Assembly: GCF_000315625.1 (NCBI RefSeq)
Contig: NW_005434610.1
Span: 359,698-423,697, forward strand
Direction of reading: 5' to 3'
From: Guillardia theta CCMP2712
Taxonomy: Eukaryota; Protista; Cryptophyta
Length of the DNA stretch: 64,000 nucleotides
Part shown: positions 58,888 to 64,000 of the stretch, piece after piece
Numbering within the stretch: position 1 is the first letter of the stretch
Layout of the letters: each line of letters starts with the position of its first letter
Made by a program: the position numbers and the translations under genes
The notes under the pieces: generated by a model
What the model was told of the DNA's origin: nothing
What the model saw: the letters and a program-made list of their open reading frames with translations, nothing else
Databases searched by the model: none

Positions 58888-61172
58888 ATGGTATCAAACA
58901 GGGTAGATCATCATCCGCAGAGCGATTCTTCAGAAATGGCGGTAGCAAAGCGCCGGAGGCAACTTAGGCAAGGCTTCAGATCCAGCCATCAATGCCTCTC
59001 GACCTCGCTCTTGGTGCTCTGCGTCCTGTGTCTCCCTCAGGTCAGGGCCCAGCAGAAGATCTACTTTGGAGTGAACGCTCTCTGCACCAGCGACCAGAAC
59101 TGCACCGCCGTTGCAGGGCTCAAGTGTCTTCCGTACAGGTATCGAGACAATGACTACCAGGTCTGCCGGTGTCAGAACGAGAGCAGGGCAGGGATCAACT
59201 GCGTGCGAGACTGCCCGACGACCAACGGGAACCTGCCCATCTGCAACGCCCGGGGGGAGTGCAACTATCAGACGGCTATCTGTGCCTGCAACAACGGCTG
59301 GCAGGGTCAGAACTGCACCGCTGAGTGCCCTGGGGGCGAAGCCTCGCCGTGCTCAAGGCAGGGCGACTGCATGCCGTCGGGGGTAAACGGAGCTGTTTGC
59401 GCGTGCTACCCGGGCTTCCGGGGAGGCGATTGCTCGATCGAGTGCATCGGAGGAAGCAGCTCTCCTTGCCTGAACCATGGCTTCTGCGAGGCCGACGGGT
59501 CGTGCTCCTGTTACGGAGGATGGCGAGGTGCTGACTGCAGCATCGCTTGCCCTGGCGGCAGCGTGACTCCATGCAACGGACATGGTCTCTGCGAGGTTGA
59601 CGCGACCTGCTCTTGCTCCACCCTGTACCGGGGGACAGACTGTTGCTTCCGATGCCCGGACTACTTGGGGGTTGCGTGTGGAGGTGTGTAGGCAGTGACC
59701 TTGTTGTTTGCGAATTCTGAAATGTCGATTTCAAGGTCGTGGGTTCTGCCAGGTGCCCACGGGGGCAGTTTGCAACCAGGCCAGGCTCGACTCCAACATT
59801 GCCAAGTGCATCTGCAACAACGGTTTCCGTGGGGACAACTGTATGATAGAGTGCAAGGGAGGGTCGTCCAACCCTTGCTCGGGGCACGGGACATGTGGAG
59901 CCGATGGCTCCTGCACCTGCACTCTAGGATGGACAGGCTCTGCATGCGAGAACGCCTGTCCAGGTCAAGATCTCCCGTGCTCAGGGCATGGGACTTGTGT
60001 AGGGATTAATGTCACTGGCTGCTCCGTGGGGTGCTATCAAGTCAGCCCTACCTCCCCTCCCCTTTGCAACTGCCAGGCTGGAATTCAGGGCAAAATCTCC
60101 TACTACTATGGAGCTGATTGTTCACAGCCAGGCAAGTTGACGACGTTCACCTCGTCCCATCAGCATTCACGTTCGATGACGCTCAAGTGCAGGGTACAAC
60201 ACGCTATCGATGCCGAGCCTCATCTCCTCCTCTTCTCCCAGCGTCACCGTCACGTTCCGCGTGTCAGGAGCCACAAGGTCTTCCTTCGACTCAGTCCGAC
60301 AGACCGTCTTCATCCGTGTGCTCGCCACCACCGTCGCCTCCTCGGCTGCCAACATCTCGCTGGTGTCTTTGCAGGTATGAGGTGCCATGGCGGGAGAGCA
60401 CAGGGTGCTGAGGTCTGCCCAGGACGTGAAGCCTGCGGACTTTACTTTTGATGGCTCGAGCACCTTCACTTCAGGGGTTGGGGTGCAAACCAGTCAGATC
60501 CAGACTCCTTCGACCTTGACAAGCACGCCAACCATCCTTATCTCCCTGCAGCTGGCCGTAGTTGACAACCCGGCAGCAGACACCATGGTGAAGACGGTGA
60601 GGCAGGGTCGATCGTCCCCTGCTACCAGTAACGGCCCTCGTTCCCAGCTGAAGACTGTCGTCAAGGACGGGATCCTGGAGAAGGCGATGCACGACGAAGG
60701 CCTGACAGGTAGTAGCGGCTCAACTCCTCCTTGAACGAGGTCCGATGACCCTCCTTGTACAGGCATCACGCTGACTCTCGATGGAGTGATACCTTCCTTT
60801 TCCATGAGTCCATCGCCATGACTGCCTTGAGCAGGAGCCCGTCGCCCGAACTACCGTCACTAACGTCATATTCCGCCCATCGCCCAAGCTCCTGGCTGTG
60901 ATAGCCCCGGTCAGACCTTGCCAACAATCCTTGAAGTCTCCTCGCCTCGCCTCCTGACAGCAGTGCATGCAGATGCTGCTGTTCGGGGTGGTCGGCCTCT
61001 CCATCGGCCTCGTGGGCTTCCTGGTTCAGAGGAAGAAGCACATGGAGGCAACTACATCTTTCCTTCCATCCTGCTTCCCTCACTGACGTCTTGCCGTTGA
61101 CCGCAGGAGAAGAAGATGGTAGACATGTACATCAAGAGAATCGCTTCCTCGGCATCACAGCCAGGGCAGTAG
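58888..61172 (+). CDS. Type I membrane protein with tandem EGF-like (tenascin/laminin-type) repeats
   Basis: Hydrophobic signal (LLVLCVLCLPQVRA). Repeats of C-x-GHG-x-C...C-x-C-xx-G[WF]-x-G-xx-C. S/T-rich stalk. TM MLLFGVVGLSIGLVGFLV. Tail ends ...SQPGQ* (TAG 61170-61172). Confidence 0.85.
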
Positions 61173-61666
61173 ACCGTCAGAGTTGGTTCAGTTTAGCCTT
61201 GTACGGCGATTCCCGTGGAATTCCTACTCGTTCCTTCCCATGGCTCGTTTGCAGCCTGATCCTCGCCAGTTGTACCCTGATAGTTTAATCCACACGCGGT
61301 GGCTTCCGTGTTTGTGAAAACGCTCTTTCATCCTTGCTGCCTCGTTTGCTGCCTCGTTGGCTGCCCGTTGGCCTCCTAGTCCGACCAGGTCGGGTGATCT
61401 CAATGGAACGGCTGGATGACTAGTGCGCTGAGTAGCTGTGGAGCACTGATCAAGGAACGAATGGCACGAGTCAAGGTGTGTTCGAACAAGGAAGAGACTT
61501 TGAAGGGGAGCAGATGCTTGAGCAAAGATGGAGGGAAGGAAAAAGGTTGAGATATCATCGGCATCGTTATGAAGAAAGAAACTGTTTACTATTGTTGTTC
61601 TCCAACGTGAACAGAGAAAGCTTTCGCCCAGAATAAGATGCAAGCACAACAGAGAAGAACCTGACA

Positions 61667-64000
61667 TCATTCTCCTCTTGTGTTTCGATAGTCGACGTAC
61701 CGCCTGTGCCCCTGACTGTGCATGGCCCAGGCCTTGTAGTCCTTGAGCGACAACTGCAGCTCGCACACGTGCAAGTTCACACCCAGTCGACGAGTCTCTT
61801 CGTTGTCAAGACGGACGTTGAGACATAGGTCACGGTACGCTCCTGACTGCTGCGACGTGAACTGGGGATCGAAACGATTTTTGACGCGCAGGATCACAAG
61901 CTCTTCGTCCTCGCAGATCCCTTGGAAGCATCTCGAGATGTCCTCGATGCTCTCGAACACGATGCATTGCCGCACCACGTCCAGCAGCCGCCAAACTTCC
62001 CCCCTGTACGACCTGCACAGCTTCTCGATCGCCCGATCGAAGCCCTTGAGCCTCGCCCAGCCGGGTCGATGCTGCGTGTCCTCTCCCTCGTACCTCACCC
62101 ACCTGACCTCCCTTGGCCCCTCCTCCTCCTTCTCCTCCTCCTCCTCCTTCTCCTTCTCCTCCTCCTCCTGCACTAGCCCCCCCCACTTCTTGAGCAGCTC
62201 CTTCACCTTGCGCAGGTAGGGCAGCTCAAGCAGCATGGCCTGATTGTAGAGCTGATCCAGACATGCGATCTTGCTCGTGTCATGTCGCACGACCCAGTCG
62301 AACCCTGAGGGGCTCTGCCCCTGGTCCCTCCCTTGGAACTGATAGATGACTCCCTTGCGCCAGGCCTCGGGCCCGGCATCTACCATCGCCTTGAGCCTCA
62401 TGACTTGCTCCATGGTCTCTCGATTGGTCGTCAGCGCTTGCCAGACCTCGTCGTAATGCTTCACGTCGTCCTCGATCCCCCGCCGTGCTCGATGGATCGC
62501 CATCCTCCGCAGCAGCAGCACACCCAGCCAGCAAAGAATCAGGATGGATCCGCTGATGGGAACCTGAAAGCCTCTTCTGCCAAACACATAGGAATAGTGG
62601 AAGTTGATGGCAAAGTAGTTCATCAGTGCATTGACAGGAAGAAACGAAAAGAACTTCTCCTCCCAGAATACCAGGAGCAGTCCGGTGACCAACGCTGCAA
62701 AACCCTGAAAGAACCAGAACAGGATGTCGATCGCCAAGCCATTGATCGCACTGCAGATTCCAGTAGCGATCTCGAAAAAGGCAGGCACAGAAAAACACAT
62801 GGAAAAGATCACAACGCCCGTACGGGGCCACCCGAGGAAGCTCGCCAAGGCACCACCGAGGCAGGCAAACATCACCGGGAAGAGGTAGAAGATGGTGCCA
62901 ACAGCTTGATAGAGGGGCGGGACCAGCGAAATCACGTTCTCAGCTCCTCGCTTTAGGGTCGTTGGGTACGGCTCCTCCCATAAGGGAATGCAGGCGGTGC
63001 TGTAAAGGTCCCACTTGCATCGGGTGCCTGCTTTCAGAATCCAGCTGGAGTCTTGGAGCTCCCACGGGCTCTCTGTTGAGGTCGAGGTGACCTCCAGCTG
63101 GAAGCGGACGGGGTCACCTCCCTGGGTGCCGGGACGACTGTCGGTAATGAAGTAGAAGGCGTTTGCGGCTTCGAGAGTCTTGAAGGAGAAGTAGAAGTCG
63201 TTTCCCACCTCCACTCCCTCCACCGGCGAAGAGACCTTACATCCGTCCAAGATCCACCCGAGCTGTAGCGAGTAGTTCCCCCCGGCTGGTAGCGCAGCCT
63301 CCCGCCATTGCACAACCTTCATCCTGGCTGCATGTACATGGAACACCTGTCGACCAGTGAATTCATACCAGATCCCTCCGGGCCCGAACGTGTAGATTAG
63401 ATAAAAGGTGCCGCCAGCCAGCAGCAGCACCTTGAACCAGGTCTTCTGGATCGCCAACGTGCACGGGATAGATGTGAAGAGCACGCTGGCTGTCCCGGCC
63501 TTCTTGACTGCGAGTCGCAGCTCCTGGAGCCTCGCCCCGAGAGTATCGCCAGCAAACAGACATCTTTGTCTCAGCAAGTCCTTCTGCCTTCGTGTCTCAG
63601 TCATGGAGTGAGCGGCAGACCGGTAGAGTGAATTCAAAGACCCGACCTCCTTGCCCATATCGCTAATCTTGTCCACCACGACCCTTGAAAGTTTACGAAT
63701 CCTATCAGGACTCAGCATGCAAAACCAGGCAAGCGGGTCAAGCTTCGACATGAACAAGGAGCATCTCGCACGCAAGTCGATCTGGTGGATGCGCCGGTAA
63801 GTCTTCAAGTCTTCCAACATGCTCGGGGTTGCCGCAGCTTGCAGACGGGCCAGGACCAGTCGAAGTTCACAGACGAACGCGCACGTGCCGTAGAATCGCG
63901 ATTGCTCTGTGACCAACCTTACCTTTAGACAAACATCCCTGACCTGTCCCAAGTGTCTGCTGTCATCCCCCACAGCGAGTCTGTTCGTGAGGCTCACAAT
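61667..64000 (-). CDS. Multi-pass membrane protein with a C-terminal RelA/SpoT-like nucleotidyltransferase domain and an N-terminal degenerate copy (5' truncated by window)
   Basis: Open frame to the window edge. C-terminal RLKGFDRAIEK...LLDVVR...RVKNRF...GAYRD...HVCELQL. Six hydrophobic segments. N-terminal LTNRL...GQVRDVCLKVRL...FVCELRL. Confidence 0.8.
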   Translation of the reverse strand: MVSLTNRLAVGDDSRHLGQVRDVCLKVRLVTEQSRFYGTCAFVCELRLVLARLQAAATPSMLEDLKTYRRIHQIDLRARCSLFMSKLDPLAWFCMLSPDRIRKLSRVVVDKISDMGKEVGSLNSLYRSAAHSMTETRRQKDLLRQRCLFAGDTLGARLQELRLAVKKAGTASVLFTSIPCTLAIQKTWFKVLLLAGGTFYLIYTFGPGGIWYEFTGRQVFHVHAARMKVVQWREAALPAGGNYSLQLGWILDGCKVSSPVEGVEVGNDFYFSFKTLEAANAFYFITDSRPGTQGGDPVRFQLEVTSTSTESPWELQDSSWILKAGTRCKWDLYSTACIPLWEEPYPTTLKRGAENVISLVPPLYQAVGTIFYLFPVMFACLGGALASFLGWPRTGVVIFSMCFSVPAFFEIATGICSAINGLAIDILFWFFQGFAALVTGLLLVFWEEKFFSFLPVNALMNYFAINFHYSYVFGRRGFQVPISGSILILCWLGVLLLRRMAIHRARRGIEDDVKHYDEVWQALTTNRETMEQVMRLKAMVDAGPEAWRKGVIYQFQGRDQGQSPSGFDWVVRHDTSKIACLDQLYNQAMLLELPYLRKVKELLKKWGGLVQEEEEKEKEEEEEKEEEGPREVRWVRYEGEDTQHRPGWARLKGFDRAIEKLCRSYRGEVWRLLDVVRQCIVFESIEDISRCFQGICEDEELVILRVKNRFDPQFTSQQSGAYRDLCLNVRLDNEETRRLGVNLHVCELQLSLKDYKAWAMHSQGHRRYVDYRNTRGE

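Follow-up and report, generated by a model that had tools for sequence, protein, structure and literature searches.

A transcribed tandem membrane protein of Guillardia theta with two domains of predicted RelA/SpoT-synthetase fold

Among eukaryotic (p)ppGpp synthetases, only the RSH1-4/CRSH proteins of plants and algae have been characterised (PMC6881373, PMC10107265). They have the superfamily synthetase fold in common with the Guillardia theta protein described here, but they differ in being soluble and targeted to the plastid, in having HD hydrolase, TGS/ACT or EF-hand domains and in scoring above the PF04607 threshold. None of these domains occurs in the present protein, which has 12 transmembrane (TM) helices and two ectodomains. 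No sign of plastid targeting or solubility was found in it, which agrees with the contrast to plastidial, soluble algal RSH enzymes drawn in the original prediction for this locus. According to a 2025 paper (PMC12691689), the characterised alarmone synthetases, exported forms aside, act in the bacterial cytoplasm. The highest structural scores were obtained for SAS1/RelQ and SAS2/RelP (PDB 5DED, 6FGK and 6EX0; Z 13-14.7 over ~145-151 residues). The SAS enzymes are small soluble bacterial homotetramers, of which SAS1 is allosterically activated by pppGpp, whereas the protein studied here holds two unequal copies at the membrane within one chain, reads YRD where they have GYxSxH and stays below the Pfam threshold. 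Among solved structures the best sequence match is Tas1 (Apk1, PDB 6OX6), a type VI (p)ppApp-synthetase toxin domain of Pseudomonas aeruginosa. Tas1 is secreted by a bacterium as a soluble toxin and is paired with an immunity protein, in contrast to the duplicated, putatively cytosolic domain of a eukaryotic 12-TM protein considered here. To our knowledge, every alarmone synthetase characterised to date is either bacterial or plastidial and either soluble or secreted. The divergent SASs named divRel from Aspergillus, Gibberella, Dictyostelium, Thalassiosira and Phaeodactylum (Atkinson et al. 2011, PMC3153485) are, like the present family, unplaced and uncharacterised synthetase-only eukaryotic RSH homologues outside the plastid RSH clades; neither membrane-embedded nor tandem forms are described there, and Guillardia was outside the sampling of that paper. 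Our literature search found no paper on any member of the family and no report of a receptor-type alarmone synthase.

Gene structure and domain architecture

The window analysed is a stretch of 64,000 nucleotides of the G. theta genome, the end of which (61667-64000, minus strand) encodes residues 561-1337 of a 1,337-residue protein. The open reading frame (61667..63997, minus strand, 776 codons) is open up to the window edge and matches residues 561-1337 of gene model P0001 with 100% identity; this model has three exons, and the remainder of it lies outside the window. Extension of the frame past position 64000 through this gene model, a check proposed with the original prediction, revealed a complete upstream copy. 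The gene is transcribed. Transcript-like contigs from three studies are confined to the coding sequence and a tail of 31-85 nt, their 3' ends lying at 61582, 61595 and 61636 and none of them covering 60500-61581. The 4 partial reads in the 6% of RNA-seq run X20 that was sampled are too few to be informative.

The full protein consists of one module repeated in tandem. In each copy a TM helix, a beta-sandwich ectodomain, five TM helices, a long juxtamembrane helix and a putatively cytosolic domain follow each other, and the whole protein has 12 TM helices and two ectodomains (hydropathy, and AF2 on module 2). What had been described as a 6-TM protein actually has 12 TM helices, in two complete receptor-like modules arranged in tandem, and the window holds the second half only (Table 1). 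The succession of one TM helix, a beta-rich domain of ~155 residues and five more TM helices that had been read from the sequence was reproduced by AF2, with the beta domain at ~140 residues.

Table 1. Features of the gene within the window, with residue numbers of the 1,337-residue protein
Feature	Position	Strand	Evidence
N-copy RSH-like domain, C-terminal 80 residues (561-640)	63761..64000	-	BLASTP vs C copy
Putatively cytosolic inter-module linker, residues 641-746, without recognisable domain	63443..63760	-	Pfam, AF2 boundary
Module 2 first TM helix (residues 747-775, TM7 of whole protein)	63356..63442	-	AF2
Module 2 beta-sandwich ectodomain (residues 780-918)	62927..63343	-	AF2 strands 41-179, pLDDT >90
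Five tightly packed TM helices (residues 923-1062, TM8-TM12)	62495..62914	-	AF2, hydropathy
Juxtamembrane region (residues 1063-1133)	62282..62494	-	AF2, family alignment
C-copy RSH-synthetase-like domain (residues 1134-1337)	61670..62281	-	Profile, AF2, motifs
K1212	62045-62047	-	Syn1 motif, C copy
D1234	61979-61981	-	Syn2 motif, C copy
Y1282	61835-61837	-	Syn3 motif, C copy
E1307/Q1309	61754-61762	-	ExQ, Syn4, C copy
Stop codon	61667..61669	-	ORF listing
Apparent 3' untranslated tail	61582..61666	-	Contigs, three studies

The N-copy RSH-like domain comprises residues 462-640 in its entirety, the rest of it being past the window edge, and residues 620-790 gave no match in Pfam. The AF2 model of the sensor/TM part of module 2 (m8482c8a03371, pLDDT 91.6) has 1+5 helices, with TM7 as model helices 8-26 and 31-36, which packs with the other five as a six-helix bundle. 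TM8-TM12 correspond to model helices 184-209, 213-240, 244-266, 268-294 and 303-323, joined by loops of 1-8 residues. The exit of TM12, with five Arg within 11 residues, runs on as a single 44-residue helix (1042-1085) bearing the family-conserved I..D...YD..W, of which W1080 (W341 of the alignment) is conserved in at least 90%; two short helices and then a flexible stretch follow. The C-copy domain contains an E-rich low-complexity insert at about 62120-62167.

Both RSH-like domains lie on the same side of the membrane because six TM helices separate them (AF2, hydropathy), as had been supposed. This side is probably the cytosol, the two grounds for the orientation being the positive-inside rule and the availability of ATP. 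N-glycosylation sequons are confined to the beta-sandwiches, with one (N802) in the ectodomain of module 2, and no cleavable signal peptide was evident at the N-terminus when read by eye.

Fold and active-site motifs of the two RSH-like domains

Pfam, NCBIfam and single-sequence PDB searches with the ORF and its pieces returned nothing meaningful, and matches to KPBB_C, E6 and GLTP were discarded as sub-threshold noise. The search with PF04607 that had been recommended for both halves was borne out in the relatives only: the ORF and its pieces gave no match to it even at E <= 10, whereas 24 of 73 relatives matched (best E 9.7e-6), with no other family recurring. Among the matches listed, no relative reached the Pfam gathering threshold of 27 bits (21.6 bits for P0066). 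A profile of the 73 family sequences, compared with 177,635 PDB sequences, matched only Tas1 (1.2e-4) and YwaC/RelP (1.6e-3), K, D, GYR and ExQ being aligned with their counterparts.

The AF2 model of the C copy (pLDDT 89, pTM 0.85) shows the alpha/beta NTase architecture of the RSH SYNTH fold, with a central five-stranded sheet and flanking helices. Its best 50 Foldseek chains were all RSH synthetases (probability 1.00), and VIA gave Z 14.7 for SAS1, 13.7 for RelP, 12.1 for Tas1 (rmsd 2.3 A, 20% identity) and 11.9 for CapRel. The best 26 VIA rows were all RSH (Z 9-14.7), followed by a gap, the other NTases (RsfS, Pol lambda, TdT) having Z <= 7.5. The nucleotidyltransferase fold on which the original prediction depended is accordingly seen in the models, and it is of the RelA/SpoT-synthetase type by AF2, Foldseek and VIA. 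A RelA/SpoT-synthetase fold of the putatively cytosolic domains is supported by this modelling. That the domain belongs to another NTase family, with a resemblance to RSH due to the generic nucleotidyltransferase fold, would suit the missing Pfam match and the modest PDB E-values, but it is extremely improbable given the purely RSH composition of the top Foldseek and VIA matches, the low Z of non-RSH NTases, PDB sequence matches to two RSH enzymes only and the third of relatives that match PF04607.

In RSH synthetases the G-loop Tyr of Syn3 binds the acceptor base and the ExQ of Syn4 recognises the donor adenine. The four synthetase motifs predicted for the C copy were located at their expected places (Table 1), and the full set comprises the ladder K1212/R1216/K1220/R1223, D1234, R1237, KNR at 1267-1269, Y1282-R-D, H1304, E1307-x-Q1309 and H1325/Y1328/R1332. 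Residues 1210/1212/1216/1220/1223 show the +2/+6/+10/+13 spacing of R64/K66/S70/K74/R77 in FaRel2, and the FaRel2 counterparts of D1234, Y1282 and E1307/Q1309 are the catalytic D90, the acceptor Tyr and E145/Q147, respectively; the roles of these residues in the FaRel2 active site (ladder, D90, acceptor Tyr and E145/Q147) are taken from PMC11782079. We compared the motifs in 34 two-copy relatives (34 N and 34 C copies) and 122 single-module proteins. Apart from the first Arg of Syn1 (see below), the residues of the donor-ATP ladder hardly vary among C copies and single-module relatives, and nor do the Mg-binding Asp, the acceptor Tyr and ExQ. K1212, K1220 and R1223 are invariant or near-invariant, and the ladder Ser is replaced by the invariant R1216. 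D1234 is invariant throughout the N copies (34), the C copies (34) and the single-module proteins (122), and its aligned counterpart in Tas1 and YwaC is likewise Asp. The Y1282 position is Tyr in 30 of 32 C copies and 115 of 122 single-module proteins, its GYR aligning with the GYR of YwaC, while E1307 is kept in 30/30 and Q1309 in 29/30 C copies. Other details depart from the canon: the first Arg of Syn1, two before the Lys, is not conserved (K/G/A/S/P/R) and is also missing in Tas1, which is very active; Syn2 is D-x-x-R where D-x-x-G-x-R would be canonical, and Syn3 has YRD instead of GYxSxH.

The ungapped internal repeat reported for this locus was recovered by BLASTP (E = 1e-9 for the 99 N-terminal residues in the window only), and the fragment is indeed the end of a homologous domain, as the complete upstream copy matches the C copy at E = 2e-23 with 32% identity. 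The two substitutions pointed out in the N copy, Tyr to Val and Gln to Arg, are present as V580 (63941-63943) and R607 (63860-63862, giving E-x-R). The N copy keeps the ATP/Mg core and is without the acceptor Tyr, the ExQ Gln and the terminal H..Y..R motif. This pairing of an intact C with a degenerate N copy recurs across the 34 two-copy relatives, where N copies keep the Tyr in 14 of 34 and the Gln in 16 of 34 cases (Arg in 10), and the N copy was on the longer branch in 6/6 supported same-protein N/C sister pairs. Judged from these alignments, constraint on Tyr and Gln is relaxed in N copies, and N copies evolve at a higher rate.

As the C copy appears to retain every RSH residue for donor ATP-Mg and for stacking of the acceptor base, it would most likely be an active pyrophosphokinase. 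We also weighed a transporter, channel or adhesion receptor in which both RSH-like domains are non-catalytic nucleotide-binding units (sensor or scaffold) that sense levels of ATP or an alarmone. The missing Syn1 Arg, D-x-x-R and YRD would agree with this, as would a weak likeness of the six-helix bundle to channel and permease bundles (TMEM45A Z 8.8, urea channel Z 8.0) that is within helical noise. However, Asp, ExQ Glu, acceptor Tyr and the phosphate ladder are near-invariant across 150+ diverged sequences, which points to purifying selection on catalysis, and exactly the acceptor-site residues drift in the relaxed N copies and are therefore not needed for mere folding; we judge this explanation improbable.

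The target of the C copy could alternatively be a macromolecule. CapRel, FaRel2 and PhRel2 pyrophosphorylate the tRNA 3' CCA end, and a similar reaction here, for example on tRNA, would allow local control of translation at the membrane instead of yielding a diffusible nucleotide. CapRel ranks with the best structural matches and is aligned over more residues than any other (TMq 0.57-0.59; Z 11.9, 156-158 residues), and all core motifs are common to tRNA-targeting and alarmone-making RSH enzymes (PMC11782079). A large positive patch is characteristic of alarmone synthetases and is reduced in the tRNA-targeting FaRel2 (PMC11782079), and the family conserves basic residues round the acceptor Tyr (K1267, R1269, R1283, H1325, R1327 and R1332) that appear to resemble this patch. 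An N-terminal tRNA-binding extension of the FaRel2 type was not evident either, and we attach little probability to a macromolecular target.

Sensor modules, family expansion and proposed function

The sensor/TM module had no match in PDB by Foldseek at E <= 1e-3, and in ESM Atlas its TM was <= 0.33. The wide VIA search placed a de novo six-helix antiparallel barrel first (Z 10.2), within helical-bundle noise, and naming the bundle after TMEM45A, the urea channel or rhodopsins was rejected, as the scores are within this noise as well. For the ectodomain, F5/8 type C reached a feature score of 0.87 in the Atlas, which is lead level, with a structural TM of about 0.3, and PLAT/CBM-like domains reached VIA Z of about 6. 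The ectodomain of module 2 is possibly discoidin/galactose-binding-like; an assignment as discoidin/F5-8-C was not adopted, the PF00754 match being found in 1 of 57 family members (E 0.03) without confirmation by Pfam. BLASTP between the two ectodomains of the protein was not significant, and their homology is read from the family motifs that both have in common in alignment A4, the one source for it.

A word-indexed search with the whole protein found 3 proteins and its domain-profile version 18 small fragments, while exhaustive HMMER revealed a family of 2,002 cluster representatives at E <= 1e-3, all named members of which are cryptophytes. The paralogue count proposed earlier gave, besides these representatives, at least 8 two-module genes in G. 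theta. P0002 and P0003 are G. theta paralogues, and the automatic UniProt/UniRef label of paralogues is "RelA/SpoT domain-containing". Single-module relatives have the same TM-ecto-TM-RSH layout. Across the family, identity is 12-31% in the sensor parts against 36-52% in the catalytic domain. PADLOC gave no match for this protein and a marginal one for one paralogue, and PHROGs gave no significant match.

Lineage expansion, fast divergence of the sensor parts and recurrent gene conversion or re-duplication between copies may suggest an immune or cell-fate receptor, whose variable ectodomains would detect pathogens or danger ligands and whose RSH-like domain would be a toxSAS-type effector depleting ATP through massive (p)ppApp synthesis. 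Tas1 arrests or kills cells in this manner, and this toxin, the closest solved relative by sequence, also lacks the Syn1 Arg and has the Y-K-G-D stretch and D-x-x-R in common with the family. However, the sequence match to Tas1 is a weak one (E 1e-4), and in structure the housekeeping enzymes SAS1/RelP give a higher Z. Ordinary chemosensory receptor families just as typically expand and have fast-evolving ectodomains, no partner of the antitoxin, immunity or hydrolase kind was identified, and PADLOC defence models are no more favourable. We regard such a role as unlikely. If it held, a toxSAS-like effector would have been taken over by eukaryotes to arrest growth when a receptor is triggered.

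We give about even chances to the reading of a receptor-like tandem protein whose C copy is an active pyrophosphokinase and whose N copy is regulatory. Each module would begin with an N-in signal-anchor helix and hold an extracytosolic beta-sandwich between helix 1 and helices 2-6 of the bundle, and a rigid helical extension of helix 6 would lead to the cytosolic RSH-fold domain, through which the ectodomain may exert control. The C copy would be an ATP-dependent pyrophosphokinase transferring pyrophosphate to the 3'-OH of a phosphorylated purine nucleotide, with a (p)ppApp-like or (p)ppGpp-like product, and the N copy a non-catalytic, possibly nucleotide-binding regulatory partner, perhaps in A:B contact with it. 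The acceptor is not readable from the sequence, which counts against this main reading, as do the missing PF04607 match of the protein itself and the departures from the canonical Syn1, Syn2 and Syn3 motifs. More broadly, we propose tentatively, and at less than even likelihood, that cryptophytes possess receptor-type alarmone synthases, in which a ligand of the ectodomain acts through the six-helix bundle and the TM6 extension on an RSH pyrophosphokinase, the degenerate sister domain serves as built-in regulator, and (p)ppApp or (p)ppGpp are cytosolic second messengers. If true, such proteins would correspond in function to transmembrane adenylyl cyclases while using an unrelated enzyme fold of bacterial type, and this would mean receptor-generated (p)ppNpp-type second messengers in a eukaryotic cytosol.

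Animal transmembrane adenylyl cyclases (6TM-C1-6TM-C2) have a like layout, with two six-TM blocks each joined to a cytosolic catalytic-type domain, one of which is degenerate. The cyclase analogy of the original prediction holds for this 6TM-catalytic-6TM-catalytic topology but not for catalysis, as the cyclase active site is at the C1/C2 interface and that of RSH enzymes is inside one domain, because of which a pseudo-dimer is not required for catalysis. Each block here also bears a beta-sandwich ectodomain, unlike in the cyclases, and Pfam scans of all segments found no class III cyclase domain (C1/C2). That RSH catalysis needs no dimer leaves the second copy without an explained purpose, and this too counts against the main reading.

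The family is eukaryotic, transcribed and lineage-expanded, and its apparently catalysis-competent RSH domain is tethered behind sensor ectodomains. Homogenisation between N and C copies halts exactly at a catalytic-site residue in four paralogues, and the pairing of intact and degenerate copies offers a natural case of pseudo-enzyme evolution.

Gene structure and tandem modules

The gene under study, P0001 (a 1,337-residue model on contig JH993028.1, assembly GCA_000315625.1), lies on the minus strand as a 776-codon open frame that extends from the window edge, where it stays open, at position 63997 down to the stop codon at 61667-61669 and matches residues 561-1337 of the model with 100% identity. 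Both introns of this gene are short and lie upstream of the window, the in-window portion falling within one of its three exons, and no second copy of it was found within the 64-kb window. Three independent studies yielded contigs covering 61582-64000, none of which reaches into the 1.1 kb downstream, and in all three they break (at 62111-62242) only at an E-rich low-complexity insert, which is the pattern of transcript assemblies and not of genomic DNA.

Hydropathy analysis of the whole protein revealed a tandem duplication of one module, comprising in order one transmembrane (TM) helix, a hydrophilic beta-rich domain of 140-180 residues, five close-set TM helices, a linker and a cytosolic domain, of which the window covers the second module and the tail of the first cytosolic domain. 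The two-module layout therefore makes P0001 a 12-TM protein and not the 6-TM protein of the original prediction. The ungapped likeness noticed there between the N-terminal stretch of the window and the end of the C-terminal domain was borne out (first ~60 in-window residues, BLASTP E = 1e-9), and once extended, the complete first cytosolic domain (N copy) proved homologous to the second (C copy) over ~165 positions (32% identity, BLASTP E = 2e-23). The same TM-ectodomain-TM cluster-RSH layout is found in most single-module relatives exceeding 400 aa, which makes the module the basic unit and the tandem arrangement a derived state. G. theta has at least eight genes with two modules. The paralogues P0003 (GUITHDRAFT_145446) and P0008 (GUITHDRAFT_155121) sit on one 256,452-bp contig and are a single two-module gene divided between two public gene models, because of which the annotated gene count of the family is unreliable; the P0003 model is missing the C-terminal domain and a portion of module 1, and the 177 aa of P0008 match the JGI protein P0002 exactly from residue 890 onward.

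RSH fold and active site of the C copy

Searched directly against Pfam, NCBIfam and PDB sequences, P0001 gave no RelA/SpoT match. A four-sequence profile searched against PDB at E <= 10 returned two matches only, Tas1 and YwaC/RelP, both RSH synthetases, and a 73-sequence profile improved on these (E 1.2e-4 and 1.6e-3, respectively), with the Lys, Asp, GYR and ExQ positions of the family in register with YwaC. PF04607 was matched individually by 24 of the 73 members (best E 9.7e-6), among which no other family recurred. The AlphaFold2 model of the C copy, built on the family alignment (pLDDT 89, pTM 0.85), retrieved RSH synthetases as all of its best 50 Foldseek matches in PDB (probability 1.00). 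VIA-align Z scores were 14.7 for SAS1, 13.7 and 13.1 for RelP, 12.1 for Tas1 (rmsd 2.3 A, 20% identity), 11.9 for CapRel and 9-12 for Rel/SpoT/RelA, followed by a gap below which unrelated nucleotidyltransferases reached 7.5 at most, and a non-RSH nucleotidyltransferase is thus a very remote reading of the domain. From these profile, PF04607 and structural matches together, the predicted RSH-synthetase fold is securely assigned despite the family falling below Pfam's own threshold. In an exhaustive HMMER search the family comprised 2,002 cluster representatives with E <= 1e-3, of which 783 had E <= 1e-10.

Residue roles were drawn from the comparison of FaRel2, RelP and Tas1 in PMC11782079, where R64/K66/S70/K74/R77 of FaRel2 are the donor-ATP ligands, D90 is the Mg ligand and E145/Q147 recognise the adenine of the donor. 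The base of the acceptor is bound by the G-loop Tyr, whose change to Phe is the standard inactivating one. The C-copy positions 1210/1212/1216/1220/1223 reproduce the donor-ATP spacing of FaRel2 (+2/+6/+10/+13). Across 34 C copies and 122 single-module relatives, K1212, R1216, K1220, R1223, D1234, R1237, K-N-R 1267-1269, Y1282-R-D, N1288, H1304, E1307, Q1309, H1325, Y1328 and R1332 were (near-)invariant; that the domains purely bind nucleotides appears improbable. The sole canonical residue unconserved in the family is the Arg two positions ahead of the first Lys, which Tas1 likewise lacks, and the D-x-x-R form of Syn2 is common to both. A toxSAS-like effector in an immune or cell-fate receptor would be favoured by this affinity to Tas1 and by the dynamics of the family but has no specific support, and we consider it unlikely. 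A positive acceptor patch is ascribed to alarmone-making and not to tRNA-targeting enzymes (PMC11782079). Judged from sequence, the conserved basic residues around the C-copy Tyr seem to resemble such a patch, and a pyrophosphokinase acting on tRNA or another macromolecule is an improbable alternative.

Asymmetry of the two copies

The contrast of an intact C copy with a degenerate N copy, as originally predicted, was recovered along with its Tyr-to-Val and Gln-to-Arg changes. The N copy of P0001 further has Thr for Lys of K-N-R and Phe for H1304, with the H..Y..R tail not recognisable, and keeps both Lys, the Asp, the R1237 equivalent and the Glu. The trend is general across 34 two-copy proteins, whose C copies are essentially intact and whose N copies retain the K/K/D/R/E core (31-34/34), Tyr in 14, Gln in 16 (Arg in 10), R1223 in 11 and R1269 in 18. 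When a maximum-likelihood tree was built from the two copies of these proteins, the N and C copies of the same protein were strongly supported sisters in six proteins, with N on the longer branch in all six (for P0001, measured on stem and tip together). In P0001 and other proteins, the N copies cluster with those of close paralogues (P0001 with P0002), apart from their C copies.

In four proteins of G. theta and relatives (P0004, P0005, P0011 and P0157) the N and C copies of the same protein share an identical stretch of 46-79 residues. Its last two residues are the Glu-Leu of ExQ, after which the C copy has Gln, the N copy has Val or Arg, and the sequences that follow are unrelated. The copies have therefore been repeatedly homogenised while the N copy kept a Syn4 end and tail of its own. 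This halt at an active-site residue fits selection for an asymmetric pair, though a structural constraint could also set the boundary. In the metagenomic two-copy protein P0015 (94% N/C identity) the asymmetry is apparently reversed, with E-x-Q in the N copy and E-x-R in the C copy, which is uncertain as the C end is truncated.

The best-supported reading, to which we give roughly even odds, is that the C copy would be an active membrane-tethered RSH pyrophosphokinase, probably ligand-controlled, and the N copy a regulatory pseudo-enzyme. The analysis shows the fold, the residue conservation, the topology and the transcription of the gene, and from these the activity, product and gating, and any contact between the two domains, are predicted. 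Of the likeness to the C1/C2 layout of transmembrane adenylyl cyclases in the original prediction, the topological part stands; the N copy is not required to form the active site because that of RSH enzymes is complete within one domain. The observation itself was confirmed and its interpretation partly supported, and P0001 represents a new architecture for a known kind of enzyme.

Membrane part and distribution

The membrane part of module 2 was modelled with AlphaFold2 over residues 740-1136 on a 57-sequence alignment (pLDDT 91.6, pTM 0.82).

Predicted features of module 2 of P0001
Feature	Position	Strand	Remarks
Helix	747-775 (residues)		AF2 model
Beta-sandwich	780-918 (residues)		AF2 model
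Helices	923-948, 952-979, 983-1005, 1007-1033 (residues)		AF2 model
44-residue helix	1042-1085 (residues)		AF2 model; exits membrane via Arg-rich stretch
E/K-rich low-complexity insert	62120-62167	minus	Residues ~1172-1187, loop of C-copy domain, pLDDT 67-74

The E/K-rich insert is missing in the paralogue P0002. The 44-residue helix bears an I..D...YD..W motif conserved in the family (Trp >=90%). As the connecting loops of the five-helix group are only 1-8 residues long, its helices have to cross the membrane in alternating directions. Six helices precede the first RSH-like domain and six separate it from the second; from this even count and the positive-inside rule, both RSH-like domains and the N-terminus are predicted to be cytosolic and both beta-sandwiches, to which the N-glycosylation sequons are confined, to lie outside or in the lumen. 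Neither the six-helix bundle nor the beta-sandwich had a convincing relative among solved or predicted structures, and a discoidin/galactose-binding-like sandwich is only a lead.

Several paralogues are auto-named "RelA/SpoT domain-containing protein" in UniRef, and no paper on the family was found in the literature on alarmones or RelA-SpoT in Guillardia, cryptophytes, protists or transmembrane forms. The only such proteins listed by Atkinson et al. 2011 are the unplaced "divRel" SASs of a handful of eukaryotes, among which a membrane form is not mentioned. As far as we could find, the family is undescribed beyond this domain-level auto-annotation. Named relatives are restricted to cryptophytes (Guillardia, Hanusia, Hemiselmis and Rhodomonas). 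Besides, the P0138 cluster (41 members, ~1,139 aa) from ENA marine metagenomes is an abundant marine relative, one fragment of which was deposited as 'MAG: Promethearchaeia archaeon', probably a binning error involving a eukaryotic contig.
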